DNA from: Macrostomum lignano
Lineage: Eukaryota
Direction of reading: 5' to 3'
Assembly (NCBI GenBank): GCA_002269645.1
Contig: NIVC01002874.1
Span: 1 to 64,000, forward strand
Length of the DNA: 64,000 nucleotides
Shown here piece by piece: positions 887 through 56,034 of this stretch (positions are counted from its first letter, which is position 1; each line of letters begins with the position of its first letter). The position numbers were made by a program, and so were the translations under genes. The notes under the pieces were generated by a model. That model did not search any database and was not told the origin of the DNA. It saw only the letters and a list, made by a program, of their open reading frames with translations.

Positions 887-3444
887 TGCTCAGCAAAGGC
901 CAAGTCACAACCAAATACTACAGGCTGCTAACCAAGAACGGCGGCTGGGTTTGGCTGCAGAGCTACATGACCATCGTGCACAATACCCGGTCTTCCAGGC
1001 CGCACTGCATCGTTAGCGTCAACTACGTGTTATCGTGAGTGGCCCCGGGACATTATGCCAGCAATATTTTTTATTAATTTAAGATGACCCAAAAATAATT
1101 ACACACGTTTATTGGATTCAAAGTTTAAAAATGAAGACGCCAAAAATTCACTTCTGAACGAATTTTTGTGACTCGCATATCTTGGAATTGTCACTAATAT
1201 CTAAATCGGCCTTCAAATATCTTGGAATTGTCACTAATACCTAAATCGGCCTTCAAATATCTTGGAATTGTCACTAGTAACCAAACTCGGCCTTCAAATA
1301 TCTTGGAATTGTCACGAGTACCAAAATCGGCCTTCAAATATCTTGGAATTGTCACGAGTACCAAAATCAGCATTCAAATATCTTGGAATTGTCAAGAGTA
1401 CCAAAATCGGCCTTCAAATATCTTGGAATTGTCACGAGTACCAAAATCGGCATTCAAATATCTTGGAATTGTCAAGAGTACCAAAATCGGCCTTCAAATA
1501 TCTTGGAATTGTCACGAGTACCAAAATCGGCCTTCAAATATCTTGGAATTGTCACGAGTACCAAAATCGGCCTTCAAATATCTTGGAATTGTCACGAGTA
1601 CCAAACTCGGCCTTCAAATATCTTGGAATTGTCACGAGTACCAAACTCGGCCTTCAAAAATCTTGGAATTGTCACGAGTACCAAACTCGGCCTTCAAAAA
1701 TCTTGGAATTGTCACGAGTACCAAACTCGGCCTTCAAAAATCTTGGAATTGTCACGAGTACCAAACTCGGCCTTCAAATATCTTGGAATTGTCACGAGTA
1801 CCCAAATCGACATTCAAGCATTTTACCGTCAATCGCAAGAGCTGTACTAATTAAGAAAAATTCAAAACATCCGAACCCCGCAGGGAGCTCGAGCACCAGA
1901 ATCTGCAGCTGCAGGCCGACCTGCCGCAGTCGCAGCAGCTGCACCTTCAGTCGACGCCGTCCAGTTGTTCGCAGAGTTCAACAGTTGTTGGCGGCAAAGA
2001 GCCGGCGGCCGAGCCCAGCCTTGCCGGCACCCCGCTGTCAGCCGTGTTCGGCGCTGGCGACTCCAGCGACGCTCCGGTGACTCCGGCGAAGGCGGCCCCG
2101 ACAGCGGCCGGTGCTGGCGGCCGGAGCGGCGGCGGCGGCGGCGGCGGCACAAAGGCGCGCGGCGCGTCGAAAGCCGCAAGAAGCCGCACCGCGCCCTACG
2201 TGGCGCCAGCTGCGTCGACAAGATCAGCCGCCACAGGTGCCGGCGCCGCCGCTGCCACCGCGGCAGCCTCAGCAGCGGGAGCGGCAACTGCTGTTGCCAC
2301 ATCGCAGAAGCAGCAACAGCAGCAGGCAGTCGCTCCGCCAGAACCTGCAGCAGCCGCTGTCGCTTCGTCACCTCTGGTGTCTCCCGGCTCGGTCTACAGC
2401 GGCAGCGGCGGGTTCGCCGCCAGTCAACAGCATCAGCACCAGCTGCTCCAGCATCAGCATCAACAGCACCAGCACCAGCACCAGCAGCCGCAATACCTGT
2501 CAAACTACTATTCAGGAATGATGGAGGATCCAGCAGCCGCCTACGCCGCCGCCGATGCGGCCGCTTATTCATCGTCGTCGTGCGGATCGTCAGTGGTGAT
2601 GAAGCAGCAAGCCCAGCATCCGGGATATTACCAGCCAACACCTGCAGGCCGATATGGTCTCGGGCAGCATCATCAGTACCAGCAGCACATTCAGCATCAT
2701 CAATCATTGATGCAGCACCAGCAGTCTGCCGTGATGCACTATAGCGACCATCAGCAGCATCATCAGCATCATCAGCAGCATCATCAGCAGCAGCAGTTCT
2801 CCGCCTCAGCCTACAGTCCGCATCCTTCCAGCGGAGCCAGTTCAGCTTCATCAGTCTCGTCCGCCTCACCCCAGCATCCCAATCTACATCATCATCAGCA
2901 GCAGCAGCAGCAGTTGGCAGCAGTTTATCCCGGATACCCGGCGCACCAGCATCAGCAGGATGGCAACGCCAACACGCTGTCGGCGGCGGCCCTGCTGCAG
3001 ATTTCGTCCAAGTGCGTCAGCCCGCCGCCGCAGCAGCCGCCGCAGCCGGTGATTGGCTGCGCCCCGCCCGCGATAGACGCTGCGGACCCGGCCAACAGTC
3101 CGATTGCCGGTTACCATGGCTACGGCTCGATTGGGTACGACTATGCCGCATGTATGACCGCGATCGATGGTGGTCATGAGTTCGCGCACGCATATCCCCA
3201 GCATCCAGGCCAGCTGCAGCATCACCAGCAGCTTCATCAGCAGCATCAGCATCAGCAGTTCCACAGCCCGCTGCCAGCGGCGGCACAGCAGCAGGTGTAC
3301 AAAGACCTGTCACTGCCCACCAGTGTGATCGTGGAGCCGCACAAGTACCAGCAGCAGCAGCAACAGCATCTTCATCAGCAGCATCTTCATCACCTCCAGC
3401 ATCCCGTACAGCCTCCGCTCGCCGCGAACAGTTACGTTCATTGA
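887..3444 (+). CDS. sim: Single-minded bHLH-PAS transcription factor, last two exons (887-1034, 1884-3444); 5' exons lie upstream of the window
   Basis: Exon ttacag|887..1034|gtgagt encodes [49 protein letters not shown], which closely matches the SIM PAS-B/PAC C-terminus (GQVTTKYYR...[13 protein letters not shown]). The phase-2 join to cgcag|1884 gives ELEHQNLQL and later RSRTAPY (SIM-like KSRTSPY), then a Q/H-rich tail ending at TGA 3442-3444. Confidence 0.9.
1178..1818. repeat. 40-bp minisatellite (ATCTTGGAATTGTCACGAGTACCAAAATCGGCCTTCAAAT) in sim intron 1035-1883
   Basis: About 16 tandem copies. It accounts for the spurious ORFs at 1222, 1262 and 1383. Confidence 0.97.
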
Positions 3445-4119
3445 CCAAATCGGCGGCCTGTTTCTGATAATGTCAAGGACACCTGAAGCTAGAACTCTGG
3501 ACACGAAAGCAAAACTCCGACTATCGAGGGCTCCAATCCAGATTTCGAGCTTACAAGCGTCCATGTATTGTGCAGTCCAGTCAATATTCTACTTGTAAAT
3601 AATTCTATATTGCTAACACAATACATCCTTGTCGTTCTGTTTTCAATCTGTAAATCAATCAGTTTTTAATGTCAATCAATTTGTCGAATTTTAGTTGCAA
3701 AAATCTTTGAGAATGTTTACCTGCGCCCCTGACCGAAACAGTCGCGACCTGGACTGATCTCGATGACCTTGAACAATGACCTTTGCACACACGTGTGCAT
3801 ACTAAATTATAATCTACTCTCTTCTATTGTTGTAGTTGGCAGACCCGATCAGCCGCTGTTCTCCGTACGCGTTAAAAATGTTTCGCCAAACAGTCTGATA
3901 GATATGATCGATATATTTAAATATAAATGCATCCAAAAATTAACTTTTAATTGTCTTGTCTAGCGCTTGCCTTGTGGTCCTGTGTCGTTTAAGTGATTCA
4001 GACATTGTCTCTGAAGCTTCTATTTTATGCGTTTATTTATTTCTGAGTTTATACTTTTTCAGAAGCACCCGATTTATATAGAGATATTCAGAAGTAGACA
4101 TCTATGAGCGCATTCTGAT

Positions 4120-4710
4120 TTCAGAGATCTATAGATACTTAGTGTAAGAGATCTATAGGCAGATTCGGGTGCAGAGATCTATAGGCACATTCAGGTGCAG
4201 AGATCTATAGGCAGATTCAGGTCCAGATATCTATAGGCACATTCAGGTGCAGAGATCTATAGGCACATTCAGGTGCAGATATCTATAGGCAGATTCAGGT
4301 CCAGATATCTATAGGCACATTCAAGTGCAGAGATCTATAGGCACATTCATGTGCAGAGATCTATAGGCACATTCAAGTGCAGAGATCTATAGACACATTT
4401 ATGTGCAGAGATCTATAGGCACATTCAGGTGCAGATATCTATAGGCAGATTCAGGTCCAGATATCTATAGGCACATTCAGGTGCAGAGATCTATAGGCAC
4501 ATTCAGGTGCAGATATCTATAGGCAGATTCAGGTCCAGATATCTATAGGCACATTCAAGTGCAGAGATCTATAGGCACATTCATGTGCAGAGATCTATAG
4601 GCACATTCAAGTGCAGAGATCTATAGACACATTTATGTGCAGAGATCTATAGGCACATTCAGGTGCAGAGATCTATGGACAGATTCAGGTGCAGAGATCT
4701 ATAGGCAGAT
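4120..4710. repeat. 26-bp minisatellite (GCAGAGATCTATAGGCACATTCAGGT) with a 234-bp (9-mer) higher-order duplication
   Basis: The variant AGACACATTTAT occurs at 4391 and 4625, 234 bp (9x26) apart. Confidence 0.93.
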
Positions 4711-5259
4711 TATTACTTGTCAGGTAAAGTAAAATACAAAGCCCATACTTTTTCAACTTGAAGACAAAAACTGCTAACAGAAATGAAGGCCTCTGTAGCA
4801 GAGGCTCCTCTTGTGGATATGAAAAATCAGCAAGCAAAAATCTAACTGTATGCCTTACACACACCCGAGAGCAAACACCTCATTCCTGTCTCACTTCTCA
4901 CCCCTCATAGCAGCAGTTCCGCAGCAGCTCGTGCAGGGTTGCGGGGCGGGGGTTACGAATAAAGAAGAGGGACCTTTTTATATCCCGACCTAGGGGAGAT
5001 AAGACACGGCTTGTGTATGCTATAGTAAAGATGCTTTGCGATCCTAGCTATACTCGTAGTGTAATAGAGAGGCCGTGGAAAGAAGATCCTTATAAATAGA
5101 GGCACCAACCAACGTGTCTTTTTAAAAGGGATTAATAAAGAGACTGAAATCCTCTATCCATGTGTGGCACTGACACTCCCAATCTCGAGGAATAATCCTG
5201 TAGCTAGCAATATCAATCAAAGAGATATAATAATAATAATAATAATAATAATACTCGCA

Positions 5260-5402
5260 GGGGCTGTAGCCCAGTGGTTGGAGCGTCGCACTCACGACTG
5301 ATGGGTCGGGGGTTCGATTCTTGACTCACTCGGAACAATTTGTGTCCTTGAGCAAGACACTTAACTCTGCATTGCTTCAGTTCACCCAGCTGTAAAATGG
5401 GT
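5260..5402 (+). mobile_element. tRNA-derived CORE-type SINE (head plus CORE domain; the body may extend to ~5690), preceded by (TAA)n at 5227-5252
   Basis: A box TAGCCCAGTGG (5267) and B box GGTTCGATTC (5311) are followed by GTCCTTGAGCAAGACACTTAAC...CAGTT...CTGTAAAATGGG, resembling the MIR/CORE consensus. The acceptor and anticodon stems do not fold as an intact tRNA. Confidence 0.75.
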
Positions 5403-7644
5403 GCCAGCATTAGCTGGGGTAATTGAGGCTGTGTGTGGCGACCCCCCAGTCCTTGGACTGAACAGCCGCACGCAGCCTTCAGATGCGCCGCGCAATAGCT
5501 GCGGCTGAGCTGTCGGTTGCACATCTGGCCATTGTCGGCATTGTCGGAGGGCTGCGGACCCCTGGCGCAACGCCTTCGGGGACATTATCCCACAATCATC
5601 GCTGAGGCAATTCCGCAGACTTCTGAGCACACTCATGCACACGCTCACGCAGGATGTACAGCGACCCGTGCACTCTCTGTACATGCCTTCAAACCTGGAG
5701 GTCGTAGCTTACAGAATGCATTTAGTTTCTCATAAAGCTTACAAGAATTTTATCTACTAAAACAGAAAAAAGTTATTTCATAACTAATTTAAGTCATAAA
5801 GTCCGAAAAATTCTGACTCTTTTAATCACAGAGCAAAAACGGATGGTGGTGATGATTAAACACAACTTGTTTCTATTCATAGCTCGTATATAAGGAACAA
5901 ATCATCACTTTTTAAATTCGTTGTCACTTTTACTGTAAGACTATCAATGTGACATTGTGATGCTTTTTAAACGATAATTTTTGACCAGCAAACACCAAAG
6001 CTGCGCTTGCAGCTGCCTCCTATATTTTGTTCTGGGATTAAAAGTAGTAGCATATAATTGTCAGCAGAGCCATTAAAGAGACTCAAAATCTTCTTAGCTG
6101 AAAAAAACGCGAACAAGCTCCAACCTGATCTAAACTGTTCGCGCCTCATCAATGCCATTCTCAAAGAAGGGGGATATTTCTAGCTTCGCCAGAAGCAACA
6201 ATATATGATTATTAATTTGCACCGAATGACCCCATCCCCTTCACACACCTCTGGGGCCCGCAATCATAAAACAGGTTGCCGACAAAAGAGGCGAGCTCGC
6301 ATTGTTAAACATAAAAAATGATGACTAATGGATTAGATATTAGCTTAGGTGAATTAATCCGTTTCAATTAGCTAAACGTTCTGTTTTCTCATTTGAATGA
6401 TTTGCAGGCTAAAAAACTGCAAACTGCCTACCTGGTTAAAATGCAGTTTTTAAAGCGATATTGAAATTTAAAAGTAATAAAAATTAGCAAAATTAGAGGC
6501 TAAAACTGAATCCAGGCATACTGAATGAACTCGCACAGCGCAGGGTGCCAACACAGAAATCGAGACCCCCCACTCCACCGAAAACACGCGGGCCAAAAAA
6601 CCTGCTCTCTAAAAGAAGATTAATGACCTCGGAGCGTGATTTTAATACCGAAAATATTCGCTAAAACACGAAGGGCAGAGGGGAGAGAGAGAGTGAGTGG
6701 GAGAGAACCGAGCGCCCGCACAGATCTCACATATTCCCCCAGCCATAGATCCCAGCTGCTGCTCAGAAACTGCTCACACTCCTATATCCTGTCCCGGATA
6801 AACCTCTCTTTATCTTGGCGAACCAAGTCCTCGAATATGCCAATAATACCTCATGCTCCAATGGCATAGAGCCCTCAGAGCATCACTGTATTGAATTTGT
6901 CAGCCAAATTGATAATTCAAATCTTCACTGCATAGAAGTCTATGTAAAAGCTCAAAAATTCAATAGAGAGTCTATGAGAGAGGTTGCTGCTAGGATCCTT
7001 ATTTATTTATTTATGCTGATGTCTATGACCGCTTGGCCATAGACAGAAGCTGTTTAGAATCTATAGTAAAGATGCTTGAATGGGATTTTAGGCATTTAGG
7101 CAACTTAGACTTCGATTTTTTTCTGTGTAGCTAGCGTCATACTACTCCCAAGTATGAGTAGAAAAAGTAACATATTGTTTAGCTTTTTTGGAAAAAGTCT
7201 GATAAAAAATGTACAAAAGAACTTATTGAAGACTTCAGATAATTTTTTGAACGATACGTGCAAAGTCTCCAGCCCTTTGCAGCAGGTGACAAACATATAT
7301 ATTATCATTGGTACATTATTGTCGAGGTCGATTATTAAAGGTATCGCAGTTTAGTTTGAGAGTTCAACAAGAAGCATGAATAAACAATTGATATTGGAAA
7401 AGCTTATGAAAAAAATAAAGCATAGAAAATATAAGAATAGAGGTGCACAATGACGGTACTGCTACTAAGAATCCTTAAAAAATGAACCGATACAATTTGG
7501 ATTAAGGTGCTAAACTACGTAAAGCCTTCACAGTTTACATGCAAGAAAAATTATGCTTTTTTTTCAAGAAAACGAGCAGAAACAAGAATATTTAAGAAAT
7601 CTGCATTTAGAAATTTTAGGTCACTGAGGCACGATGGGAAACTT

Positions 7645-8560
7645 AGTGTACACTGAGGCCCGATGGTGAGTGGGTGCTTGCTTGGCCTGGGGGGGAGTGT
7701 ACACTGAGGCCTGATGGTGAGTGGGTGCTTGGCCTGGGGGGGGGGCGAGTGTACACTGAGGCCCGATGGGTGAGTGGGGTGCTTGACCTGGGGGGGAGTG
7801 TACACTGAGACCCGATGGGTGAGTGGGGTGCTTGGCCTGGGGGGGGCAAGTGTACACTGAGACCCGATGGGTGAGTGGGGTGCTTGGCCTGGGGGGGAGT
7901 GTACACTGACCCGATGGGTGAGTGGGGTGCTTGGCCTGGGGGGGGCAAGTGTACACTGAGACCCGATGGGTGAGTGGGTGCTTGGCCTGGGGGGTCGAGT
8001 GTACACTGAGACCCGATGGGTGAGTGGGTGCTTGGCCTGGGGGGGGGCAAGTGTACACTGAGACCCGATGGGTGAGTGGGGTGCTTGGCCTGGGGGGGGG
8101 CAAGTGTACACTGAGGCCCGATGGGTGAGTGGGGTGCTTGGCCTGGGGGGGAGTGTACACTGAGACCCGATGGGTGAGTGGGGTGCTTGGCCTGGGGGGG
8201 GCAAGTGTACACTGAGACCCGATGGGTGAGTGGGTGCTTGGCCTGGGGGGGCAAGTGTACACTGAGACCCGATGGTGAGTGGGTGCTTGGCCTGGGGGGT
8301 CGAGTGTACAATGAGACCCGATGGTGAGTGGGGTGCTTGGCCTGGGGGGTCGAGTGTACACTGAGACCCGATGGGTGAGTGGGTGCTTGGCCTGGGGGGG
8401 GGGCAAGTGTACACTGAGACCCGATGGTGAGTGGGTGCTTGGCCTGGGGGGTCGAGTGTACACTGAGGCCCGATGGTGAGTGGGGTGCTTGGTCGGGGGT
8501 GGGGGCGAATGTACATAGAGGCCCGTGCTTGGCCTAGGGAGCGAGTGTACACTGAGGACT
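7645..8560. repeat. ~50-bp G-rich minisatellite (GTGTACACTGAGACCCGATGGGTGAGTGGGGTGCTTGGCCT(G)n) with variable poly-G tract
   Basis: About 18 tandem copies. It accounts for the Pro-rich minus-strand ORFs at 7551, 7621 and 7643. Confidence 0.96.
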
Positions 8561-10118: not shown

Positions 10119-11445
10119 CTAAAGCAAAAACTTGCCAACCACAAGGCCCAGCACCATGGCCAGGACTAGGAACAGAGCCGGCGGCACCAGCGGGCCTCTG
10201 GCCGTGGCCACGGCAGTTGAACCTGACGCCGACGAGACATTGGCAGATCCCGACGGAGAGCTGGGCGGCGACGGCCGCATGGCCAGCTTGCGCAGACGGA
10301 GATCCTGCAAGAGAGATGGTTGTTAATTTTAACTGGCCAGTTATGCACACCTCGTAATGCTTATGACTAATTAGGGGTAAGCGTCATAGAAAGTACGCGA
10401 TGCACTTTTGGAGATTGTAGCCTAGACGAGGGGCCCAGCCAAGGTAAGTCGCAAAAATGCCTATCCGAAAAAATACAGACGTAGTACTAATTAGATGACG
10501 AGGCATTTAGTCTTAATAGGACAGTCATTGATACTCCTGCTGTTTACCAAAATTTGCGTTAATTTTGCTTTTAAGTTTTTCACAGGTAAGTCGAATTTTT
10601 GGTAAAAAATTAAGTCGCACGGCCAGTGTAAATCTGGGAGGCTGTGCATGTATGGGTAGGAGCTTTGAACTCATTATTGAAAGCATCTCGCATTTATAAC
10701 AACTCTGGTTAGTCTACTTGAGTGGGTAGAAAGTTAAACGATAACAAAACGACTCTTGGACGACTTTATCATGTACGTTCAAACGTACTTTAGAAGTACG
10801 CGAGGTACTTTTTAAAGTACGGAAAGTTTTTCAATTACACAAAGCACTTTTCAAGACTTTGTACTTTTGCAAACAAAAACAGGGTCTCACTTGTTCCGCT
10901 AGCCGAGAGTTTTCATCGCGCAGTCGCTGCAACTCCTGCTGCATTTCGTGCGCGTTTTTCGGCAAATCCGAAGGCGCCGAATTGGCCGCCGCTGGCCCCG
11001 GTTGATTGGGCGACGGCGCAGAAGCGTTGGCGACTCCGTCGGCTTCAATTTGTACAACGCGCAGCTTGGAGTCCATCAGCTTGTCGGACGAAGCCGAACG
11101 CCAGGCCTCGTCAAGAGCGGCGCCAGCCAGATTAGGAGGCGTACTGGCTGGCATTAGCAGGCTCTGCACCATGAATTTGTGCCGGGAGCGCTGCTCGGCT
11201 GTGTCGGACTGATCGCCAGCGCTTGGCTGCAGCATGACGGCGACTTCGACCTCGCCGCCGGCCTGAATCAGGCCGCTATTTGGCCGGACGCAGTACCGTT
11301 TCGGAGCGGTTGTCTTCACTTTAAAGGCCACGGGCTGGTCGGCAACGGGATTGCTAAGTCGCAGAGTGGTGGTGACCACCCGGTCGAATGGGCCGCGGAA
11401 CACCAACTCGGAATCTGGCTTCAGGCTTAGGATCTGGCTAGGCAT
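10119..11445 (-). CDS. VAP: VAMP-associated protein (VAP-A/B family): MSP domain, coiled coil, C-terminal TM; exons 11445-10891 and 10304-10119 (246 aa)
   Basis: MPSQILSLKP...FRGPF..VVTTTLRLSNP and the signature FKVKTTAPKRYCVRPNSG. Donor CAA|gtgaga and acceptor ttgcag|GAT are in phase 0. The terminal TM is LFLVLAMVLGLVVGKFLL. Confidence 0.95.
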
Positions 11446-11679
11446 AGCGGCTGGCTAAGGCTGGGTGAAGCAATATAATTACACACTTTTCAGGTGAGAA
11501 GAGATGGAACAGCTAATTGGCTGAAACGGATTCATTAACACAATTGTCAGCAGGTTAGTAGTGACCGCCCTAGCGTCGCTGGAGTTGGGAGTTCCTCATT
11601 TCTCAATGACATCGGATTTCTAAGCCCAACACTGCAAGTACTTAACAAGCTTCAGATCCTAAAAGGACAGATCCCAGCT

Positions 11680-12525
11680 TCAGATCCTAAAAGGACAGAT
11701 CCCCAGCTTCAGACCCGAAAACTCCAGATTCAAAGAAGAGTCTAGATTCTCAAATGAAAGATCCTCAAAATCCCCAAACTTAAAATACTACAAGTTCAGA
11801 TCCCTAAAGTTCAGATCCTCTAAGCTCAGATCCTCATCTTCAGGCCCTATAAGCTCAGATCCCTTAAATTTCAGACCCTAAAGTTTAGATAATTAACTTC
11901 AGATCCTTAAGTTGGAATCCCCAAACTTTAGATCCTTTAAAGACAGATCCCTAAATTCCAGATCCTAAATCTAAAGACCCTTAAAGTTTCAGATCCCTAA
12001 AGTTCAGACCCTCAAGTTCAGATCCCCAAAGTTCAGATCCTCAAGTTCAGATTAAAGTTCAGACCCTAAAGTTCAGACCCTAAAGTTCAGATCCCCAAAG
12101 TTCAGACCCTCAAGTTCAGATTAAAGTTCAGACCCTAAAGTTCAGATCCCCAAAGTTCAGACCCTCAAGTTCAGATTAAAGTTCAGACCCTAAAGTTCAG
12201 ATCCCCAAAGTTCAGATCCTCAAGTTCAGATTAAAGTTCAGACCCTAAAGTTCAGATCCCCAAAGTTCAGACCCTCAAGTTCAGATTAAAGTTCAGACCC
12301 TAAAGTTCAGATCCCCAAAGTTCAGATCCTCAAGTTCAGATTAAAGTTCAGACCCTAAAGTTCAGACCCTAAAGTTCAGATCCCCAAAGTTCAGACCCTC
12401 AAGTTCAGATTAAAGTTCAGACCCTAAAGTTCAGACCCTAAAGTTCAGATCCCCAAAGTTCAGACCCTCAAGTTCAGATTAAAGTTCAGACCCTAAAGTT
12501 TAGATCCCCAAAGTCCAGATCCCTA
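11680..12525. repeat. Composite satellite of 12-15-bp AAGTTCAGA-core monomers forming a 55/69-bp higher-order unit
   Basis: The order [TTAAAGTTCAGA][CCCTAAAGTTCAGA]1-2[TCCCCAAAGTTCAGA][CCCTCAAGTTCAGA] repeats from ~12040. Monomers are degenerate toward 11680. Confidence 0.93.
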
Positions 12526-13330
12526 AACTATTTCATTATCTTACCACTTTAGTAGAGAAACTGAGCCAGTCAAAACAAACACCAACACGTACTCAAAAGA
12601 TGGTCATAAAAGTAGAAATATTTGAATTTCTTATAAAGCCTTAATAAATTCCAGGTAAAACAGAGTACCGGGTTGCAGAGATGAGTTCAAGTATTATGAA
12701 GGTAGTTTGAAGATAGCTAGCATTACATCATATCCTATTCTATTAGAGTCATAATTTAAGTTTACGACAAAGTAATTCCTGTACTTTATATCCGCGTGGC
12801 CATAGACAACTTTTAAAACTTGAGGATACGACGACAGATTACAATTACAATATGATTATTATACAGATATTGCTATGAAAACCATGTTCTCTAATAAGAC
12901 TAAATGCCATATTTGGAAGCTTCGAGGATTACGCAAGCTACTATTAATTCCACAAAAAATGATTTCGCATCGCATTCTAATTGAATGCCGGAAAACATTA
13001 AGGTACATTATGTAAAAAAAGATTAGTTTTGCGAGAACCAACTTTTGAAACTTAAACTTAAGACAAAAACTTTACAGCCAACGATTAAAACAGACAGACA
13101 AACAGTTTAAGAGGAAATTAACTTTTCACACCGGAAATCTTATCTACTCTTTTTCAGTAGAAAAATTAGCGCTCTCATTTTACTTTATAATAGTAAATAA
13201 TCTATTTAACTGTACAAGAATTAGCATTTTCCCTGTTTGAAGCTGCAAAAGAAAAGGGATGGCGCCCCAACCCCCAGCAAGGCCGATAAACAGTTGACTT
13301 TCCTCTTGCCCGCTTGTGTCTGACTTTGGC

Positions 13331-13624
13331 CTCTCTCCTTACTGCTCTCTAATTGGCTGAGCTAGATTGGGCCTGCACCCTAGACTTGGTTTCGTCCGTC
13401 TGAATTCGACCTCTCTCCTTACTGCTCTCTGATTGGCTGAGCCAGATTGGGCCTGTCCTCTAGACTGGGTTTCGTCCGTCTGAATTCGACCTCTCTCCTT
13501 ACTGCTCTCTGATTGGCTGAGCTAGATTGGACCTGCCCCCCTAGACTTGGTTTCGTCCGTCTGAATTCGACCTCTCTCCTTACTGCTCTCTGATTGGCTG
13601 AGCTAGATTGGACCTGCACCCTAG
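13331..13624. repeat. 80-bp tandem repeat (~3.7 copies), each copy with two ATTGG/CCAAT motifs
   Basis: CTCTCTCCTTAC recurs at 13331, 13411, 13491 and 13572. Confidence 0.95.
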
Positions 13625-16600
13625 GCTGAGTTTCGTCTGTGTAGTTTCGAGTGCAGTTCTGTGGCAGGGGCTGTGCAGCTGCAGCGAACGGGGAGTCTCC
13701 ACTTGATGGATTTGATCTTCAACTTGACTGAAAAAGCAATACGCTCGTAAGTTTTCTTTCATACATTGGCTTTAACCTTTTTAAACTTTTTTGTTGGCAA
13801 TTGAGATACTATTCGATCAAGTCGTCCTATATGGTCAAGAGAAGCAATAAAACTGCTACCTCGGGTTTAAATTTAACAATTAAAGTAATTATGAATAAAA
13901 ACCGTTAACTAAAATGTTTGCAAAGGGTAGCAAAATACGCAAACATAATCGGCGACTTTAGCATCTCTTTACGTGTCAGCCAAATGGAAGTCGCTGGGGT
14001 CCATCTCGCCATTCTTGCTAGCCCAATGGCCACGATTACAAGAGGCCAGCTCGTCGAACACGACCCGCTTACACTGGGCATAGTCGGCGCATTTCAATGC
14101 TCGCAAGCTGACACTGTTCAAGTCTAAATATTCACCATCGGCTAATAATCTGCTTTGGATTCGAGCATTAATCCGTTTGGCAACCGGCACCGAGGCTGAT
14201 TTGTTGGCAATCTCTTCAGCCAGTTTGACTATTCGCGACAAAGCGGCTCGCTTCGACAGTCTGGAGACTCCGCCACCGTCTAGACTGTCGGTGTCGGGCA
14301 GCTGGCGCTCAGCCGGGGTGACATTCTGCGATCGGCGAATATTTTTCTTACCCTGCGGCCCGTCAATCACTTCGGCTGTGCCGGCACTGCCGTCTACTGG
14401 CCGATACCAATTGATTGACAGCACGGCGGTGTCGGGATCGGTCGAGCCGAGGCGCAGAGGGTCGCTGGTGCGGCCCAGCCAGGGATCGGCCACGAGCTGG
14501 TAGGCTGGGGAGGCCAAGCGATGCCGGAGACGGGGCAGGCGGCAGAGGAAGCCGCGGGCCATGTTGGCGTGACTGTAGCGACCGGCCACGTCTACGGACT
14601 GGGGTCGGGGCGGGTGACAGACGTTTGTGAATGGACTGTAAAATTGGTGAATCTATTTGTGAACAGATTTGTGACCACTTGTGAACAGAATGGATATTTA
14701 GATGGTGAACAGAAGGGCTATTTGGTGAACAGAATGACTAGTTGGTGAACAGAATGGCTGCTTGGTGAACAGAATGGCTGCTTGGTGAACAGAATGGCTG
14801 CTTGGTGAACGGAGTGACTACTTGGTGAACAGAATGGCGGCTTGGTGAACGGATTGGCTACTTGGTGAACAGAATGGCGGCTTGGTGAACAGAATGGCTG
14901 CTTGGTGAACAGAATGGCTATTTGGTGAACACAATAGCTACTTGGTGAACATAATAATAGCTAGTTGGTGAACCAATTGGTGAGTTTGCGAGTTGAAAAC
15001 CTATGCAACCAACAAGGCAAAAGCAAACCAACTGACCTGCAGAAACACTGGCTCAATGAAATTTGCAAGCAGGCCGCCCTGCAGGCCAACATAGTTGCAT
15101 AGCAGCAGCTTGTCGGAGCCGCAGTGCACAGCCAGACTGTTAGGATCTTCAGCCTCCTCTAAGCCGAATGTGCGCACCATTGAGCAATCGTACTTTTCGT
15201 AGCAGGCCAGCGAACCGTAACGAGACAGGTCCGGCTCCAGGACGCCGCATCTAAGGAGCGAATTATGAGGAGTGTGGTACTGTACTGAATAGGGATTTGT
15301 AAACAGCGGGATACTGAAATAGGGATTTTTACAGAGTGGGAACTGAAATAGATTTTAAGAGGATGGGATACTGAAGTGGGAATTTCTAAGACTAAAACAC
15401 TGAAATGGGATTTTAAGAGAGTGGGATACTGAGAGGGGATTTAAGAGAGTAGGATACTGAAATGGGATTATAAGAGAGTGGGATATTGAGATGGGATGTT
15501 GAGAGAGTGGGATACTGAAATGGGAATTTTAGAGAGTGCGATACTGACATACGGATTTCAAAGAATGGAAAACAATTTTTGATTTCAAAGATTTGGAGTA
15601 AAATTGAGCATAGAAAGACGCCCTACTCACTTATCGCGAAGTAGTTCCTCTTGCGAGTGCCGTCCAAGCGGGTCGCCGCCAATCGCTCCGGCGGAGTCGC
15701 CGCCGCTGTCACCTGCGGAACAGTCGCCATCAGGCGGCGAGCTGAGCAGCAGGTGCAAAGCCAGGCCGGGTTTCAAGCGCAGCCGGTCGTCGCGATTATT
15801 TGGCTCCAACCAGCGGCCCTGGCCGGAGAAGTAGGCCGACACCTCCTGGGCTAAGCGAATGCGAAAGGCCCGCTTGGCGCACACAAAAGCGGTGCTGTCA
15901 ATCACGAGCTCGCCGTAGGAGTTGTATATGTGCTCCAGCCAGTGATCGTTGACGCTGGAGCCCGTGCCCAGGGCGACCAGCTGCACTGCTGAGGATTTTT
16001 CAGGGTTTCAGTTCTACTGCACTTTGCTTTTATCTGGGATGTTTAGTCTGCGGATTTGGGATAGCGTGGCCCAGCAACTGAGGATCTGGGAGGCTGGTCC
16101 AGCAAATAAGGATCTGGGAGGCTGGCCCAGAAACTGAGGATCTGGGAGGCTGGCCCAGAAACTGTGGATCTGGGAGGCTGGCCCAGCAAATGAGGATCTG
16201 GGAGGCTGGCCCAGCAACTGAGGATCTGAGAGGCTGGCCCAGAAACTGTGGATCTGGGAGGCTGGCCCAGCAAATGAGGATCTAGGCTGGCCCAGCAACT
16301 GGGGATCTGGGAGGGTGGCCCAGCAACTGGGGATCTGGGAGGCTGGCCCAGCAACTAAGGATCTGGGAGGCTGGCCCAGCAACTAAGGATCTGGGAGGCT
16401 GGCACAGCAACTGAGGATCTGGGAGGCTGGCCCAGCAACTAAGGATCTGGGAGGCTGGCCCAGCAACTGAGGATCTGGGAGGCTGGCCCAGCAACTGAGA
16501 ATCTGGGAGGCTGGCCCAGCAACTAAGGATCTGGGAGGCTGGCCCAGCAACTAAGGATCTGGGAGGCTGGCCAAGCAACTGAGGATCTGGGAGGCTGGCC

Positions 16601-19406
16601 AAGCAACTGAGGATCTGGGAGGCTAACCCAGCAACTGTGGATCTGGGAGGCTGGCCAAGCAACTGAGGATCTGGGAGGCTGGCCCAGCAACTGAGGATCT
16701 TGGAGGCTGGCCAAGCAACTGAGGATCTGGGAGGCTAACCTAGCAACTGTGGATCTGGGAGGCTGGCCCAGCAACTGGGGATCTGGGAGGCTAACCCAGC
16801 AACTGTGGATCTGGGAGGCTGGCCCAGCAACTGAGGATCTGGGAGGCTGGCCCAGCAACTGAGGATCTTGGAGGCTGGCCAAGCAACTGAGGATCTGGGA
16901 GGCTAACCTAGCAACTGTGGATCTGGGAGGCTGGCCCAGCAACTGAGGATCTGGGAGGCTGGCCAAGCAACTGAGGATCTGGGAGGCTAACCCAGCAACT
17001 GGGGATCTGAGAGGCAGGCCCAGCAACTGGGGATCTGGGAGGCTGGCCCAGCAACTGAGGATTTAGGTTGGCTCAGCAACTGGGCATCTGGGAGGCTGGC
17101 CCAGCAACTAAGGATCTGGGAGGCTGGCCCAGCAACTGTGGATCTGGGAGGCTGGCCCAGCAACTGAGGATCTGGGAGGCTGGCCCAGCAACTGAGGATC
17201 TGGAAGACTGGCCCAGCAACTGAGGATCTGGGAGGCTGGCCCAGCAACTGAGGATCTGGGAGGCTGGCCCAGCAACTGAGGATCTGGAAGACTGGCAGTG
17301 GTGGCCTTGCAAGTAGGAATCTGAGAGGGTTCTAAGAAGGCATCTGGTAAACAGACTCTATAAGCATGGCAATACCCACGGTAAAAGTGGAACCTTAAAC
17401 TAAAAAGCGACTCACTAGGCTCCGACTGTGGCAATCGCGAATCGGACAAGAATATCGCGGCCACTTTGTCGACGCCGCCAATTTTGACATCACGAAGCAG
17501 AGCGTCCAGCTGCTTCTTGCACTGATCGGCGTAGCGATCGCCAGGGAGAGCGCCAGAGGCGGCCTGCGCGGTCATTGAGACCAAGGACGCGGCCGGAGAG
17601 GCCGAGCGATCCGCGTAGCCGCCGCCGCCGCCGCCGCCGCCGCCGCTGCCACGGGCGATGACATTCAAAGCTAGCCTGGCTGCCTCCTCCTTGGCCTTCT
17701 GCTTGGACTTGGCCTCGCCCGCTTCGTACTCGCTTGGCACTCCGTCAATTGTTAAAATAGCTAAATAGGCAAAATTTCCGCCCACCTGAACAGTTGTAGG
17801 GTTTGGGTAGGCCAGTGTGAAGGAACGCGGAGAGCTGCGAGATATGCGGGAATTCGGGGAAAGGAATGCGGGACTTCAGGGAAAAGGAATGCGGGACTTC
17901 AGGGAAAAGAAATGTAGGACTTCGGGGGAAAAGAATGTGGGACTTCAGGGAAAAGGAATGTAGGACTTCGGGGGAAAAGAATGTGGGACTTCAGGGAAAA
18001 GGAATGTAGGACTTCGGGGAAAAGAATGTGGGACTTCAGGGAAAAGGAATGTAGGACTTCGGGGAAAAGAATGTGGGACTTCAGGGAAAAGAATGTGGGA
18101 CTTCAGGGAAAAGGAATGTAGGACTTCGGGGAAAAGAATGTGGGACTTCAGGTTAAAGAATGTGGGACTTCAGGGAAAAGGAATGTAGGACTTCGGGGAA
18201 AAGAATGTGGGACTTCAGGGAAAAGAATGTGGGACTTCAGGGAAAAGGAATGTAGGACTTCGGGGAAAAGAATGTGGGACTTCAGGGAAAAGAATGTGGG
18301 ACTTCAGGGAAAAGGAATGTAGGACTTCGGGGAAAAGAATGTGGGACTTCAGGTTAAAGAATGTGGGACTTCAGGGAAAAGGAATGTAGGACTTCGGGGA
18401 AAAGAATGTGGGACTTCAGGGAAAAGAATGTGGGACTTCAGGGAAAAGGAATGTAGGACTTCGGGGAAAAGAATGTGGGACTTCAGGTTAAAGAATGTGG
18501 GACTTTAGGGAAAAGGAATGTACGACTTCAAGCTTGGGGAAAAGGAGATCCTAAACTTTGGGGAAAGGGGGATGCGGAACTTCGGGGAAATGGGGGGCGG
18601 CGGAACTTCGGGAAAAGGGGATTGCGGGACTTCGGGGAAAACGGGGATGTGGGACTTCAGGGAAAACGAGGATGTGGAACTTCAGGGAAATGGGAAACGG
18701 GCCTAGAATTGGGAATGGGAAGCGCAGCAGAAATACATTAATTAAACAAAGAATTAAAACAGCATACCCTAGGCGCCGTAGGCCTATACTCAATGCTGCC
18801 TCGCATGGCAACCGTATACTCATTAAGAATCTGATGCGGCAATTTCTGCGATCTGCCATTAATAAAGGTGCGTAGCATCTCTTGAGCAGAATCCGATTTG
18901 GACACATTGGCGTACCGAGGCATGCCATGGGCCCGGTCGGTGGCATCCAGGCTCGGCATTAGGCGCACATTTCCTGACCGCTCCGATTGGGTGCGGCGAT
19001 CGATGTACGGCTCCTGACTAGCGGCAGCGGGGCCAGGAGCAGCGGCAAACCCAGATGGAGCCGGGGTGACCTGACTATACTGCACCGGTTGCGGCTGCCT
19101 CTGCTGGCTAGCCAGTCTGTCTTCAGCCTCGCCGCCAAGCGCAGGAAAATCGGCATCGTCAGCTTGAAACTCTTGAGCCGGTTGGTTCGGCGCCAATAAG
19201 CCGAGGCTCTGCATCCGACTGCTCAGCGTCACGTGCGAATTCATTGGCAAGTTGAACACTTTTTTAATATGATTTTTTGATACCAAATGCGCCTCGTACT
19301 GCGGCCAGGCCGGTATCTGGCCGGATCGGCATACCTGGCACATGTAGGGCGGACCCTCGGATTGCAGCATGTCCTGGGTAGGCATTTCTTTATGCTGGTA
19401 ATTGAT
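13580..19406 (-). CDS. ADAR/ADAD-like protein: matrin/JAZ-type C2H2 finger + dsRBD + catalytically degenerate adenosine-deaminase domain. Exons 19406(ATG 19385)-18768, 17785-17416, 15988-15631, 15250-15037, 14598-13973 (or stop at 13969 if unspliced) and optional 13727-13580
   Basis: All junctions are GT-AG and phase-compatible. Motifs: CQVC-x13-HLVSKNH; dsRBD KLPHQILNEY...GEAKSKQKAKEEAARLAL; deaminase-fold LVALGTG, LHLLLSSPPDGD, SDK...VGLQGGLLANFIEPVFL, SINW, SRLSK, DYAQCK, GHWASK. The true start codon is uncertain. Confidence 0.88.
14660..14975. repeat. 20-bp minisatellite (CTTGGTGAACAGAATGGCTG) in ADAR-like intron 14599-15036
   Basis: About 14 tandem copies. Confidence 0.93.
15290..15570. 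repeat. Degenerate ~29-bp minisatellite (GGGATACTGAAATGGGATTTTAAGAGAGT) in ADAR-like intron 15251-15630
   Basis: About 9 diverged copies. Confidence 0.85.
16052..17296. repeat. 28-bp minisatellite (GGATCTGGGAGGCTGGCCCAGCAACTGA) in ADAR-like intron 15989-17415
   Basis: About 44 copies. It accounts for the repetitive minus-strand ORFs at 16014-17312. Confidence 0.97.
17845..18715. repeat. 22/23-bp minisatellite (GGGAAAAGAATGTGGGACTTCA) in ADAR-like intron 17786-18767
   Basis: Tandem copies with alternating variants, degenerate at the right end. Confidence 0.96.
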
Positions 19407-26010: not shown

Positions 26011-27447
26011 ATGGAATTTGTAACTAACTTTCGTACTCTTTCGTACGTCAATTACATCGGCGTTGACGATTTCTCCGATCGTCTGAGCTACCAGATTAGC
26101 AGCAGCATCCTGACCATGCTGGGCATACTGGTGACAGCGCGCACCTACGCTATGATGCCGATCGCCTGCTACATACCGCAGGGATTTGGCTTTGAGAACG
26201 GCCAGCTGGACTTTGTGGATCAATACTGCTTGACAGAGGGCACTTACGCTGTTGACGTCAGGCATTTCCATCTTCATAGCGAACGAAACGATGGCGGGCT
26301 GAGCGCCTACGCGGAGCATAAAATCTACTACTACCAGTGGGTGCCGCTTGTGCTCGGCTTCCAGGCTGTGCTGTGCTGCCTGCCCCGCCTGGTCTGGCGC
26401 ATGGTCAGCTTCGACCGGGCCGGCACTGACGTCGGGCGAATCGTCAAGCTGGCCAAGGACGCCTCGGAGGACTCTAGCGGCGGCCTGACGCGCAGGCGGA
26501 TGGTCACGCATATTGCCAGGTTAATCCAGAGGATGATCAAACGACGCCTGCCACCGAAGAAAGAAGAAAGTGGACAGTTAGACGCCCGGGCGCGCCTAAT
26601 TGTGGCCTGGCGCACGTTCAGTCGCATGAAGCCATCGCAGCTTAGTGGAAACTACCTGATTATTACCTATCTGCTAATCAAGTTTGCCTACCTGTTGAAC
26701 GCCGTAGGCCAGTTGCTTACAATGAAAGAGTTTCTACAATTGAACTCCACGCGCTACACGATGCCTGGAATTGATCTACTCAGAGAGGTGCTGGCCGACA
26801 TCGACTGGCAGAACACCATGGTGTTCCCTCGAGTGGGCGCCTGCGCCGTGAAGATGCGCTCCGCCGTTGGAGTGAACTGGCTGTACGCCCAGTGCGCCCT
26901 GCCGGTCAACATGATCAACGAGAAGATTTACGTATTTCTGTGGTTCTGGTTCTTCGTGGTCGCCGTGGTAACAATAGTGAGCGCATTCGGTTGGCTCTAC
27001 CGTCTGGCCTGGCGCTTCAGCCTGATCAACTTTGTCAAGGACTACCTGCGTCTTGCGGACAACTATAGCGAACTAAAATCTAAAAAGCATCTGATGCACA
27101 AGTTTGTTAAGCGGTATTTGAGTCGCGACGGTGCCTTCTTAATGAAAATGATTGCGCTCAACTGCGGTGATATGGTCTGCGCAGACGTGGTCAACGCTAT
27201 GTGGGAGAGCTTTCTGTTGCGCGAGAAACTTGGCGACGCCTCGAATTCACCAGAGTTGCCCGGACTGCTGGCTCTGAACTGCCACGGGCTGCCCGCTTCC
27301 AACTGCGTGAATAGGCGCAGAAAAATGCTGAGGTGGCAGAAGAGCGCACCGGAGTCAAATCAACCACCAGTGGACTTGGACGAGCTGACTGAGCACGCCG
27401 CGGAGCTGGAGCAGTGCCGGAAGGAGGGCCGCGAGATCGACCCCTGA
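26011..27447 (+). CDS. inx: Innexin (gap-junction/hemichannel protein), intronless, 478 aa
   Basis: DDFSDRLSY at the N-terminus, EL1 cysteines (IACY, QYCL), the YYQWVP signature, EL2 FPRVGAC...CALPVNMINEKIYVFLWFW and four hydrophobic segments. Confidence 0.96.
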   Translation: MEFVTNFRTLSYVNYIGVDDFSDRLSYQISSSILTMLGILVTARTYAMMPIACYIPQGFGFENGQLDFVDQYCLTEGTYAVDVRHFHLHSERNDGGLSAYAEHKIYYYQWVPLVLGFQAVLCCLPRLVWRMVSFDRAGTDVGRIVKLAKDASEDSSGGLTRRRMVTHIARLIQRMIKRRLPPKKEESGQLDARARLIVAWRTFSRMKPSQLSGNYLIITYLLIKFAYLLNAVGQLLTMKEFLQLNSTRYTMPGIDLLREVLADIDWQNTMVFPRVGACAVKMRSAVGVNWLYAQCALPVNMINEKIYVFLWFWFFVVAVVTIVSAFGWLYRLAWRFSLINFVKDYLRLADNYSELKSKKHLMHKFVKRYLSRDGAFLMKMIALNCGDMVCADVVNAMWESFLLREKLGDASNSPELPGLLALNCHGLPASNCVNRRRKMLRWQKSAPESNQPPVDLDELTEHAAELEQCRKEGREIDP

Positions 27448-29297: not shown

Positions 29298-30705
29298 ATG
29301 GAGGACGTGCGGAACGACCAGGGCGGCAATTTCAGCTGCACCAGCTGCAGCAAGGCGCTCACCGGGCAGCGCTACATCCTGCGCGAGGAGAAGCCGCACT
29401 GCATTCAGTGCTACGAGCAGGTGTTCGCTAACAGCTGCGAACAATGCAAGGAGAAGATTGGCTGCGATTCCAAGGTAAGCTGGATGGTAACATGTAATAT
29501 TGACTTATCAAAAAACAGTAAACGCAAATTGCATGTACCCGTATGAGTTCGGAGCGACGTTTTTTTAGTAAAGGTTCTTCTTTAGAAGCTTTTCAAAAGG
29601 ACCGTACTACTTTAGTATAACAGTACGTGAAACTCAAAGATCGTGTAATGTTTTACACCTTCTTTACACCTTTGACACTGGAATGGAGATTAGTAGGCTA
29701 TTGTGTCCGTTAAGTTTCGGCTTAGTTCCCATTGCTAAGTATATAATGGTACAAGCGGATTCCCGTCCTCTCCAGGACCTGTCGTACAAGGACCGGCACT
29801 GGCACGAGCGCTGCTTCAAGTGCTCCTCCTGCCAGGGCAGCCTGGTTGACAAGCCCTTCGCCACTAAAGACGACGCGTTGTTCTGTTCAAATTGTCACGA
29901 CGAAAAATACGCCGCCCGTTGCGACGGCTGCGGCAAGCCGTTCAACGCCGGGATTCGCAAGTACGAATACCACGGCAAGCAGTGGCATGAGGACTGCTTC
30001 CTGTGCAAGGAGTGCCGAGAGCCAATTGGCAGCCGTTCGTTCATCCCGCGCGACCAAGAGGTCTGCTGCGTGCCCTGCTACGAGCAGAAGTACGCGCAGA
30101 AGTGCCGCAAATGCGAGCAGGCTATTAAACGCGGCGGAGTCACGTACAAAGGCGAGCCCTACCACAAGGAGTGCCTGGTGTGCGGCAACTGCAACGGGCA
30201 GCTGGCTGGAGTGAAGTTCACCAGCAAGGAGAACAAGCCCTACTGTGCCGAATGCTACGGCCAACTATTTGCTAAGAAGTGCTGTCGCTGCACCCAGCCA
30301 ATCACGGGTCAGTCAGTGCGCTAACCTGGGGTTACGACCAGTAGTATTATTAGGACATTGAAGCTTGAGAAAGGAAATGACGAGACCAATCTTGCCTTTA
30401 ACTTTTGTTTTCCATAGTAAATTGCATCGAATAAGGTTTTATTATAATACGGAAAGTAAAGGGCAGAGAAGCTCAGCGGAAAAATTTATTCTTTTAAGTT
30501 TGGGGCAGAATTTCTTTTGATAATAAATAGAAAAATTCTCTGAACACATTCAAACCTAGGCTTCGGTGGCTGCAAGTTCATCTCGTTCGAGGACAGGCAC
30601 TGGCACTCGGACTGCTTCGTGTGCTACAAGTGCTCAGTGAACCTGGTCGGCCGCGGCTTCCTAACAGACGGCGATGAAATTCTGTGTCCGGAGTGCGGCC
30701 GCTGA
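29298..30705 (+). CDS. FHL2: Four-and-a-half-LIM protein (FHL2/Limpet-like); exons 29298-29474, 29776-30307, 30560-30705
   Basis: A half-LIM CTSC...CIQC followed by four LIM domains (DLSYKDRHWHERCF, QWHEDCF, GGVTYKGEPYHKEC, FISFEDRHWHSDCF). Junctions AAG|gtaagc..tccag|GAC and ACGG|gtcagt..cctag|GC keep frame. A possible 5'UTR donor lies at 29043. Confidence 0.93.
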
Positions 30706-53476: not shown

Positions 53477-54265
53477 TGGAGCTCTAACGCCCTTCACATT
53501 CACCATTCTGCGGCTTCACACAACGGCTGGGCTGAGGTGGTGGTAGGGGTGGGGAGAGAAGGGATTGAAGTGGGCGAGATAGAGGGGCAGAGAGGCGATA
53601 AAGGGAAGGGATTAATTTAAGAACTAAACGTGGAATAAATGCTTCTTGACGTCGATGTTGCTCATTGGGTTTGGAGGTTTGGCAGTTGACTACAGCTTGC
53701 TGTTTGTGTGTTAGAGTCGGGGATGAATGGAGGAGGGGGAGATGAAGGGAGACTCATGAGAGACACGGGTGAGATGAAGGGATTACTGAAATGAAGGGAA
53801 GAGAGGGAGACTCAAGAAAGACACCAGTGAGATGAAGGAAGACTCAGAAGCAACCACAAGATTGGAATGGTAGGAGATTCAGCTGGGGAAGTGAGAAGTG
53901 CGAGCCTCAACGAGTTCGTAAGCCCACTTGCCCCGAGAGTCCCGTTATCTACACAAATATTCGCCCACGAAGTCCCCCAAACTCCGTGCATAGCTGGCCT
54001 TTTCCTGCGCGTTATACTCGCAGCTATTTTTGGGCAAATATTGTTTGTTCCACAAGTCGCCAAATTAGTAGAACAATGTCAGCCTTACGTCCACCACATG
54101 CATGCAGACTTATCACTCAGAGCGTGAAAATGAGCAGACTTTGGACTAAATCTTCTACGTGCTCGCTGTCTAATTCGCCTTCGTATCTGAAAAACAGAAT
54201 TACTAATGCAGCACGATAACTCTATTAATAGGACATCACAAAGGCTATTATAGTAGATAAATGGG

Positions 54266-56034
<1,769 letters not shown>

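Follow-up and report, generated by a model that had tools for sequence, protein, structure and literature searches.

An ADAD-like, probably inactive member of the ADAR family with a candidate zinc finger in the flatworm Macrostomum lignano

Introduction

Macrostomum lignano is an experimentally tractable flatworm species. The first 64,000 nucleotides of its contig NIVC01002874.1 (GenBank assembly GCA_002269645.1, positions 1 to 64,000, forward strand), referred to here as the window, carry a five-exon gene on the minus strand. This gene very probably encodes an ADAD-like member of the ADAR family, in which one double-stranded RNA-binding domain (dsRBD) is followed by a deaminase-fold domain that would be unable to deaminate. 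As far as sequence comparison can tell, the protein differs from every relative examined in having an N-terminal extension of about 160 residues with a candidate zinc finger, an unusually eroded pocket for inositol hexakisphosphate (IP6), and several insertions.

Inactive relatives of the ADARs, such as ADAD1 and ADAD2, ADAR3, ADR-1, and the squid ADAR/D-like protein, are increasingly viewed as regulators of double-stranded RNA (dsRNA) biology, by mechanisms that are poorly understood. The M. lignano locus extends the ADAD-like type to flatworms. Literature searches found no publication on a flatworm ADAD or on this M. lignano gene, and a study of planarians reported only ADAR1 and ADAR2 (PMC8797187).

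Domain architecture and predicted fold

The deaminase family A_deamin (PF02137) is matched in Pfam by residues 335-713 with 91.8 bits, against a cut-off of 27, and the match covers profile positions 1-326 of 329. A single dsrm match is borderline, scoring 23.7 bits for the isolated region and 18.9 bits for the whole protein against a cut-off of 23. ADAD-like proteins are distinguished by a single dsRBD with one A_deamin domain after it (PMC4323055, PMC6651903), and this arrangement is found here; the N-terminal extension is present in addition to it. Profile searches had been called for in a first-pass annotation, which was made by a model from the letters of the window alone. The deaminase passed its cut-off clearly and the dsRBD stood at threshold, but the two zinc-finger families named there, zf-met and zf-C2H2_jaz, fell short.

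An AlphaFold2 (AF2) model built on an alignment of 116 homologues has a mean predicted local distance difference test score (pLDDT) of 70, with values of 80-97 over the dsRBD and most of the deaminase-like domain (residues 285-720), and of 80-96 over the dsRBD itself (residues 163-253). This alignment-based model is the usable one, as a single-sequence model reached a pLDDT of only 34. Foldseek searches of the PDB with it matched human ADAR1 and ADAR2, Hydra ADAR, and Caenorhabditis elegans ADR-2, at E-values of 1e-21 to 1e-15 and target template modelling (TM) scores of 0.75-0.84, together with a series of dsRBD structures. Structure prediction, also called for by the first-pass annotation, thus yields a confident ADAR fold. 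Together with the catalytic residue losses described below, it bears out the proposal that the protein is a dsRBD-carrying relative of the ADARs that folds but would not edit.

Loss of the zinc and catalytic residues

Motif positions were numbered on a 146-sequence MAFFT alignment anchored on the human ADAR2 chain of PDB entry 1zy7, and the readings agree with pairwise HMMER alignments against chains of ADAR1 and ADAR2. The human ADAR2 string D392-C-H394-A-E396 corresponds to D360-S-T362-A-F364 (DSTAF, residues 360-364), where both the zinc-binding His and the catalytic Glu are replaced. The string S-P-C451-G-D corresponds to P-P-D416-G-D (PPDGD, residues 414-418), where the Cys ligand is replaced, and S-C516-S-D-K corresponds to C492-G493-S-D-K (CGSDK, residues 492-496). 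The equivalent of C516 is ambiguous: HMMER pairs it with C492 and treats G493 as a one-residue insertion, while MAFFT pairs it with G493. By alignment, two of the three zinc ligands and the catalytic Glu are unambiguously lost, and an ADAR-type zinc/water site is predicted to be unable to form whichever way C516 is aligned. The E396 position holds a hydrophobic residue, a state shared with the majority of the other inactive relatives in the comparison.

The DSTAF, PPDGD, and CGSDK readings of the first-pass annotation were recovered by both alignment methods. Its claim that all three zinc ligands had gone along with the catalytic Glu holds for H394, C451, and E396, but C516 is not cleanly lost, as a Cys stands one residue upstream.

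The inositol hexakisphosphate pocket

Twelve residues of human ADAR2 contact IP6 directly: R400, R401, K519, R522, S531, K629, Y658, K662, Y668, K672, W687, and K690 (PMC10278661, Table 1, after Macbeth 2005). In the 146-sequence alignment, eight of these twelve are identical in the M. lignano protein (R401, K519, K629, Y658, Y668, K672, W687, and K690), and one is changed conservatively (R400 to Lys). The corresponding sites are KR (K368/R369), K496 for K519, SRLSK (K636), DYAQCK (Y693/K697), and GHWASK (W712/K715).

Other features of the pocket count against its being intact. Three of the twelve contacts are lost, namely R522 (L499), S531 (Gly), and K662 (N681, or A687 if aligned without gaps), the last of them in a region with a six-residue lineage-specific insertion modelled at a pLDDT below 50. 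Two residues that reach IP6 through water are also lost, W523 being replaced by C500 and Q669 by Ala. By comparison, the 30 other sequences that lack the full catalytic set keep R401, K519, W523, K629, K662, Y668, K672, and W687 almost without exception, so that the M. lignano pocket is the most eroded among the inactive relatives compared. Because of the R522L, W523C, K662N/A, and Q669A changes, IP6 binding by this protein is not assured.

In these alignments, inactive ADAR relatives as a family keep the IP6 core once the zinc site has gone, and this conservation argues that IP6 has a structural rather than a catalytic role. To a specialist, a dead ADAR relative with its IP6 residues still in place would come as no surprise. 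The first-pass annotation had pointed to the keeping of most of the pocket, which is nothing special given the near-complete pockets of the other 30 sequences. The list of contacts given there is accurate, including the loss of R522 and W523, except that K662 is not retained.

Placement within the ADAR family

When 1.84 billion cluster representatives were searched exhaustively with HMMER, 389 matched at E <= 1e-3. The only match at or below 1e-30 was the query itself, and the next best had an E-value of 2e-21 and 31% identity. The nearest named matches with a dead site are called ADAD1-like or similar, and come from molluscs (Tegillarca, Potamilus, Littorina, Aplysia, Physella, and Haliotis), the sea star Acanthaster, and the acorn worm Ptychodera.

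The lophotrochozoan ADAD or ADAD1-like proteins (Aplysia XP_005110992, and those of Physella, Littorina, Haliotis, Potamilus, and Tegillarca) have the same core of one dsRBD and an A_deamin domain (PMC6651903, PMC9989829). In common with the M. lignano protein, they have a hydrophobic residue at the position of the catalytic Glu, have partly or wholly lost the zinc ligands, and retain IP6 contacts. Several have DST (positions 392-394) and PPDGD (positions 449-453) strings identical to those seen here: DST and/or PPDGD are carried by the Aplysia, Physella, and Littorina proteins, with LDSTCL and PPDGD in Aplysia ADAD1-like and IDSTAV in Littorina. Identity to the M. lignano protein is about 25-31%. 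Unlike it, they lack an N-terminal Cys/His finger and keep W523, K662, and Q669, and the M. lignano protein has extra insertions relative to them. The domain combination had been taken to be new in the first-pass annotation. One dsRBD joined to a dead deaminase is, however, the known lophotrochozoan ADAD type (PMC6651903, PMC9989829), which has been described for deuterostomes as well, and only the finger would be new.

The deaminase domain was also scored against hidden Markov models (HMMs) built from 13 clades. The lophotrochozoan ADAD model scored best (135.4 bits), followed by the lophotrochozoan ADAR1-like model (122.6 bits); the ADAR2-like model reached 108.2 bits. In a control, tardigrade and nematode dead proteins scored best on the ADAR2-like model, and a caecilian ADAD2-like protein scored best on the ADAD model. 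The control behaved sensibly, so the test is not merely drawn to dead sequences.

Neighbour-joining trees were less decisive. With all 146 domains, the query grouped with the tardigrade and nematode dead proteins on long branches, a grouping that was judged to be long-branch attraction. After other long branches were pruned, the full data placed the query as sister to the 14 lophotrochozoan ADADs together, but just 28 of 100 bootstraps recovered this position, and 52 of 100 gave a deeper branch beside a large mixed group dominated by ADAR1 proteins. Both results weigh against a secure ADAD placement. So do the low identity to any relative (about 30%) and the failure to recover an orthologue outside M. 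lignano among the cluster representatives, where Macrostomum orthologues of 50-90% identity could be hidden inside 50% clusters. The phylogeny proposed in the first-pass annotation accordingly gives a divided answer: the ADAD clade is the best placement by HMM and by pruned neighbour-joining, but with low bootstrap support.

The second rank of the ADAR1-like model and the deep placement in 52 bootstraps would both fit a different history, in which a flatworm ADAR1-type (or ADAR2-type) copy lost dsRBDs or Z-domains and was inactivated independently within its own lineage, in the manner of ADR-1. Such a history is also favoured by the variable state of the zinc site among the ADADs. Bivalve ADADs keep C451 and C516, and the HAE/C/C set is complete in ADAD1-like proteins of Lingula and amphioxus. 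Zinc ligands have clearly been lost repeatedly and independently within the ADAD branch, and the shared DST and PPDGD strings could therefore be convergent. An independent origin is nevertheless unlikely. ADAD-like proteins give the top HMM score, the nearest pairwise matches, and the best neighbour-joining placement on the full data; the single-dsRBD architecture fits an ADAD (PMC4323055, PMC6651903); and the ADAR2-like model, which does attract the tardigrade and nematode dead proteins, gives just 108 bits.

On balance, ADAD-like is the reading of the sequence data that fits best, and strict membership of the clade is weakly supported. The assignment agrees with the single-dsRBD arrangement (PMC4323055, PMC6651903) and with the position of ADADs as sister to ADAR1 (PMC9989829).

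Database names are of limited help in such comparisons. The complete catalytic set is retained in the Lingula (P0008) and Branchiostoma (P0015) proteins named ADAD1 or ADAD1-like, so the name ADAD1-like does not imply inactivity.

Gene structure, second copy, and selection

The five exons join in phase, and all four introns, whose splice sites were located explicitly, are of the GT...AG type (Table 1). The coding sequence of 2190 nucleotides has no internal stop, encodes 729 amino acids, and has TAA at 13971-13969 as its stop codon. Over all 729 residues the product shows 100% identity to UniRef entry A0A1I8H8C9, an uncharacterised M. lignano 'DRBM domain-containing protein', and the open reading frame (ORF) assembled by hand in the first-pass annotation is therefore an existing, uncharacterised gene prediction. 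That annotation was right that the multi-exon ORF is clean and consistent in phase. It had also implied a separate zinc-finger exon, of which there is none, as the finger and the first half of the dsRBD both lie in exon 1. The acceptor of exon 5 is CCCCAG at 14599-14604, and across this junction the protein matches ADAR2 without gaps (VFLQ/SVDVAGRYSHANMARGF against IYFS/SIILGSLYHGDHLSRAMYQR, with a slash at the junction). An alternative acceptor, TACAG near 14640, was rejected as it breaks the reading frame.

The exon-3 acceptor is a NAGNAG tandem (cagCAG, window 15985-15994) with an alternative site 3 nucleotides downstream. Its two outcomes, ...SEPTVQL... (P0001, P0157, and P0158) and ...SEPMQL... 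(P0155 and P0156), both occur among deposited M. lignano protein models.

A second copy of the gene, paralogous or homeologous (Mlig013792g1, protein P0156), lies on GenBank contig NIVC01001971.1 and is referred to here as L001. It has five matching exons at 98-99.7% identity, an intact ORF, and the same canonical splice sites as the window copy. The two coding sequences differ at 15 synonymous and 7 non-synonymous positions. The ratio of non-synonymous to synonymous differences per site (pN/pS) is 0.15, a significant synonymous excess (binomial p = 1.8e-5). The dsRBD and deaminase part alone gives a ratio of 0.066 (p = 3e-5), and the first 162 residues give 0.30 (p = 0.06, not significant). 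The folded domains are under clear purifying selection, and the N-terminal extension is less constrained.

The locus is a real five-exon M. lignano gene and not an annotation artefact. A pseudogene in decay, or an artefact that yields no protein, might be suspected from the great divergence and long branch of the protein, from its several insertions, poly-Gly tract, and eroded IP6 pocket, and from introns packed with minisatellites. It is highly improbable that this suspicion is correct, since minisatellites are found all over the window and not just in this gene, the ORFs of the two genomic copies are intact with canonical splice sites, the AF2 fold is confident, and synonymous changes are in strong excess. 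A pseudogene was rejected on the low pN/pS.

The N-terminal extension and its candidate finger

The extension of about 160 residues is found in M. lignano only and is mostly predicted to be disordered. Near its start is the pattern C-x2-C-x13-H-x5-H (C16, C19, H33, and H39), as described in the first-pass annotation. Such a motif is unlikely to arise by chance: in 200,000 shuffles of the protein it appeared in 0.03% of cases with a strict pattern and in 0.46% with a broad C2H2 pattern, and in a six-frame translation of the whole window the only other instance belongs to a LIM-domain gene. Overall, it is somewhat more likely than not that the finger is a translated, zinc-binding module.

The resemblance is to fingers of the U1/matrin/JAZ type (zf-met and zf-C2H2_jaz, as in ZNF346/JAZ and ZFR), with which the motif shares a single C2H2 unit, the H-x5-H spacing, and a basic K-x-H-x-K-K tail. 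This class of finger binds dsRNA, and the Pfam label of zf-C2H2_jaz is 'double-stranded RNA-binding'. The M. lignano finger differs in scoring below threshold, in lacking the usual Phe, and in its 13-residue Cys-to-His spacer, the usual spacer of zf-met being x12. It also stands alone, whereas JAZ and ZFR have several fingers.

Other observations count against a real finger. In a Pfam search with the N-terminal 60 residues, zf-met (PF12874) scored 12.6 bits (E 0.18, cut-off 21.2) and zf-C2H2_jaz (PF12171) scored 11.6 bits (E 0.33, cut-off 22.6); both values are about half of the gathering cut-offs, and the alignments span residues 29-39 only. The assignment to the matrin/JAZ class made in the first-pass annotation is consequently not upheld by Pfam. 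The finger of the second copy scores no better (11.2 bits), and a PDB sequence search with the finger region returned just matches to classical C2H2 fingers at E ~1. In the AF2 model, residues 1-161 have a pLDDT below 50; the alignment has no depth over the N-terminus, which explains the lack of a confident finger structure. The pN/pS of this region is not significantly below one, and one of the deposited protein models (P0158) begins downstream of the finger.

These same observations would suit a plain ADAD-like protein in which the Cys/His pattern is fortuitous, is decaying within a disordered and fast-evolving tail, or is left untranslated because the protein starts further in, for example at M144 or M158. 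The alignment of only the C-terminal half of the finger in Pfam, a spacer one residue longer than usual, and the absence of such a finger from the relatives scanned also favour this account. This alternative is a serious one, if on the doubtful side. The low frequency of the motif in shuffled sequences tells against it. The flanks of the motif fit the class, with an aromatic residue ahead of C16 and K-N-H-I-K-K surrounding H39, and the sub-threshold zinc-finger matches are limited to zf-met and zf-C2H2_jaz, two families of dsRNA-binding fingers. M1 is the first ATG past an in-frame stop, a TGA 26 codons upstream, and the finger and the dsRBD share an exon. Both copies of the gene also preserve C16, C19, H33, and H39; a V35G difference between the copies falls between the two His positions.

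A sub-threshold match of the N-terminal 60 residues to RWP-RK (E 0.033) is stronger than either finger match; it concerns an unrelated family and was taken as noise.

No C-x2-C-x11-14-H-x4-6-H motif was found in any of the 149 other best relatives listed (0/149). Similarly, a Pfam scan of 31 inactive relatives found no zinc-finger family in any of them (0/31); with the query included, the scan found A_deamin in 32 of 32 proteins and dsrm in 24 of 32. As the first-pass annotation had supposed, the finger is not routine among relatives of this protein. If real, it would be lineage-specific, and the combination of finger, dsRBD, and pseudo-deaminase is one that, judging by these scans, is unseen in the other ADAR-family proteins retrieved.

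Possible roles and known analogues

With His replaced by Thr, Glu by Phe, and Cys by Asp, the zinc/water-activating site would be dismantled, and because of this the protein is most likely an RNA binder rather than an enzyme. Grip on dsRNA would come from the dsRBD, whose KxKAK (region-3) motif is intact, and from the side of the dead deaminase domain that faces RNA, and the deaminase-like core would probably still fold around IP6. The protein may sequester or escort dsRNA substrates, and might in this way modulate editing by true ADARs or act in the RNA granules of germ cells. Reasoning from its relatives, a role in substrate sequestration or escort, in the modulation of ADAR editing, or in germ-granule RNA metabolism is likely. 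Binding of dsRNA and of IP6, binding of zinc by the finger, and the biological role are what we infer from the sequence and from these analogies.

The N-terminal C2H2 motif would probably form a U1/matrin-like finger, and could add contacts to RNA or protein. We tentatively consider a fuller reading, possible rather than probable, in which a U1/matrin-type dsRNA-binding finger has been fused onto an ADAD-type dead deaminase. The product would be a three-module dsRNA reader, whose translated, zinc-binding finger would contribute to the choice of RNA targets, for example in the regulation of ADAR editing or in germline RNA granules. Should the finger prove real, a dead deaminase scaffold would here have naturally gained a dsRNA-binding module of another type, a modest evolutionary novelty rather than a new sort of system.

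The squid sqADAR/D-like protein, an inactive lophotrochozoan relative of the ADARs, offers the best experimental parallel for the possible action of the M. lignano protein. In the squid protein C451, C516, and E396 are mutated and most IP6 contacts are kept; it has no deaminase activity, and it inhibits editing by ADAR2 in vitro (PMC10278661). By its published description, it has two dsRBDs, keeps H394, and lacks a zinc finger, whereas the M. lignano protein has one dsRBD and has lost H394.

Vertebrate ADAD1 (TENR) and ADAD2 also combine one dsRBD with an inactive deaminase domain, and they have no N-terminal finger. In the mouse they are described as testis RNA-binding proteins needed for spermatogenesis (PMC10278661), and ADAD2 acts with RNF17 in germ granules (PMC10040813, PMC10359003). 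Testis-specific expression and roles in granules or with piRNAs are known for mammalian ADADs only. The sole vertebrate ADAD compared here, the caecilian ADAD2-like protein, keeps H394 and has lost E396, C451, and C516.

C. elegans ADR-1 is a non-catalytic regulator of editing. It and vertebrate ADAR3 are non-editing dsRNA binders of the ADAR family, which is the type proposed for the M. lignano protein. They differ from it in having two dsRBDs and an ADAR2-type deaminase domain; the M. lignano protein has one dsRBD, and its ADAR2-like HMM score is 27 bits below its ADAD score. Vertebrate ADAR3 has been reported to inhibit ADAR2 (PMC10278661).

Introns, repeats, and neighbouring genes

The features of the gene and its surroundings are collected in Table 1. 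Each of the four introns is filled to 58-87% by a minisatellite array, and the four arrays look unrelated to one another. Introns 1 to 4 measure 982, 1427, 380, and 438 bp in the window and 1079, 2249, 169, and 386 bp in L001. The arrays of introns 1 and 2 were matched directly in L001, with differing copy numbers. The gene immediately downstream, which encodes a VAP-like protein with a major sperm protein (MSP) domain, holds the same position in L001, so synteny is conserved between the two copies.

Table 1. Coordinates of the ADAD-like gene, its introns, and other features (window positions unless L001 is stated; a slash in a splice site marks the exon boundary)
Feature	Position	Strand	Remarks
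Exon 1 (residues 1-206)	18768-19385	-	Start codon, candidate C2H2 finger, low-complexity linker of ~120 residues, N-terminal half of dsRBD; donor AGG/GTATGC; 100% identity by tblastn
Candidate zinc finger, C16-x2-C19-x13-H33-x5-H39	19269-19340	-	CQVCRSGQIPAWPQYEAHLVSKNH; residues 16-39 read CQVC-x13-H-LVSKN-H
Intron 1	17786-18767	-	87% is a 22/45/67-bp minisatellite (17844-18694); same array in the same L001 intron
Exon 2 (residues 207-330)	17416-17785	-	C-terminal half of dsRBD with KQKAKEEAA motif, poly-Gly tract, start of deaminase-like domain
Intron 2	15989-17415	-	86% is a 28-bp unit x44 (16067-17296)
Exon 3 (residues 330-449)	15631-15988	-	Deaminase-like domain with DSTAF (15885-15899) and PPDGD (15723-15737)
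Intron 3	15251-15630	-	73% is a 29-bp minisatellite (15283-15558)
Exon 4 (residues 449-520)	15037-15250	-	CGSDK (15109-15123); K519 = K496, R522 to L499, W523 to C500; C492 adjoins the C516 position
Intron 4	14599-15036	-	58% is a 20-bp unit x12.6 (14703-14955)
Exon 5 (residues 521-729 and TAA)	13969-14598	-	C-terminal half of deaminase-like domain; IP6 positions K636, Y677, Y693, K697, W712, K715; several lineage-specific insertions
L001 introns	3619-4697, 5065-7313, 7672-7840, 8055-8440 (L001)		
MSP-domain, VAP-like gene	10831-11445	-	Immediately downstream of the ADAD-like gene; L001 counterpart 11204-12070
Innexin	26011-27447	+	Single-exon ORF, Pfam 272 bits
Three-LIM FHL-like gene	29683-30324	+	Single-exon ORF, clear Pfam match
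EGF and transmembrane protein	52187-52831	-	Single-exon ORF, clear Pfam match
BTB/POZ protein	60671-61390	-	Single-exon ORF, clear Pfam match
Example repeat arrays	25-776, 1177-1817, 7645-8499, 42516-43509, 46142-47982, 54250-56039, 56604-59195, 61633-63055		

Tandem repeats saturate the window as a whole. More than 20 arrays, built of units of 4-120 bp, reach a score of 400 or higher; they include (ATAG)n x447 and a 44-mer x62, and many of the long ORFs in the mechanically produced ORF list are translated repeats. About 330 bp downstream of the stop codon of the ADAD-like gene, an 80-bp unit is repeated four times (13318-13637), each copy with CTGATTGGCTGAG, a CCAAT-box-like ATTGG. A further ORF of 466 codons at 2044-3444 on the plus strand, in a stretch of 57% GC, is extremely rich in Gln, His, and Ala, with poly-Q/H tracts, and could be an exon of a low-complexity gene resembling those of transcription factors, or a chance ORF.

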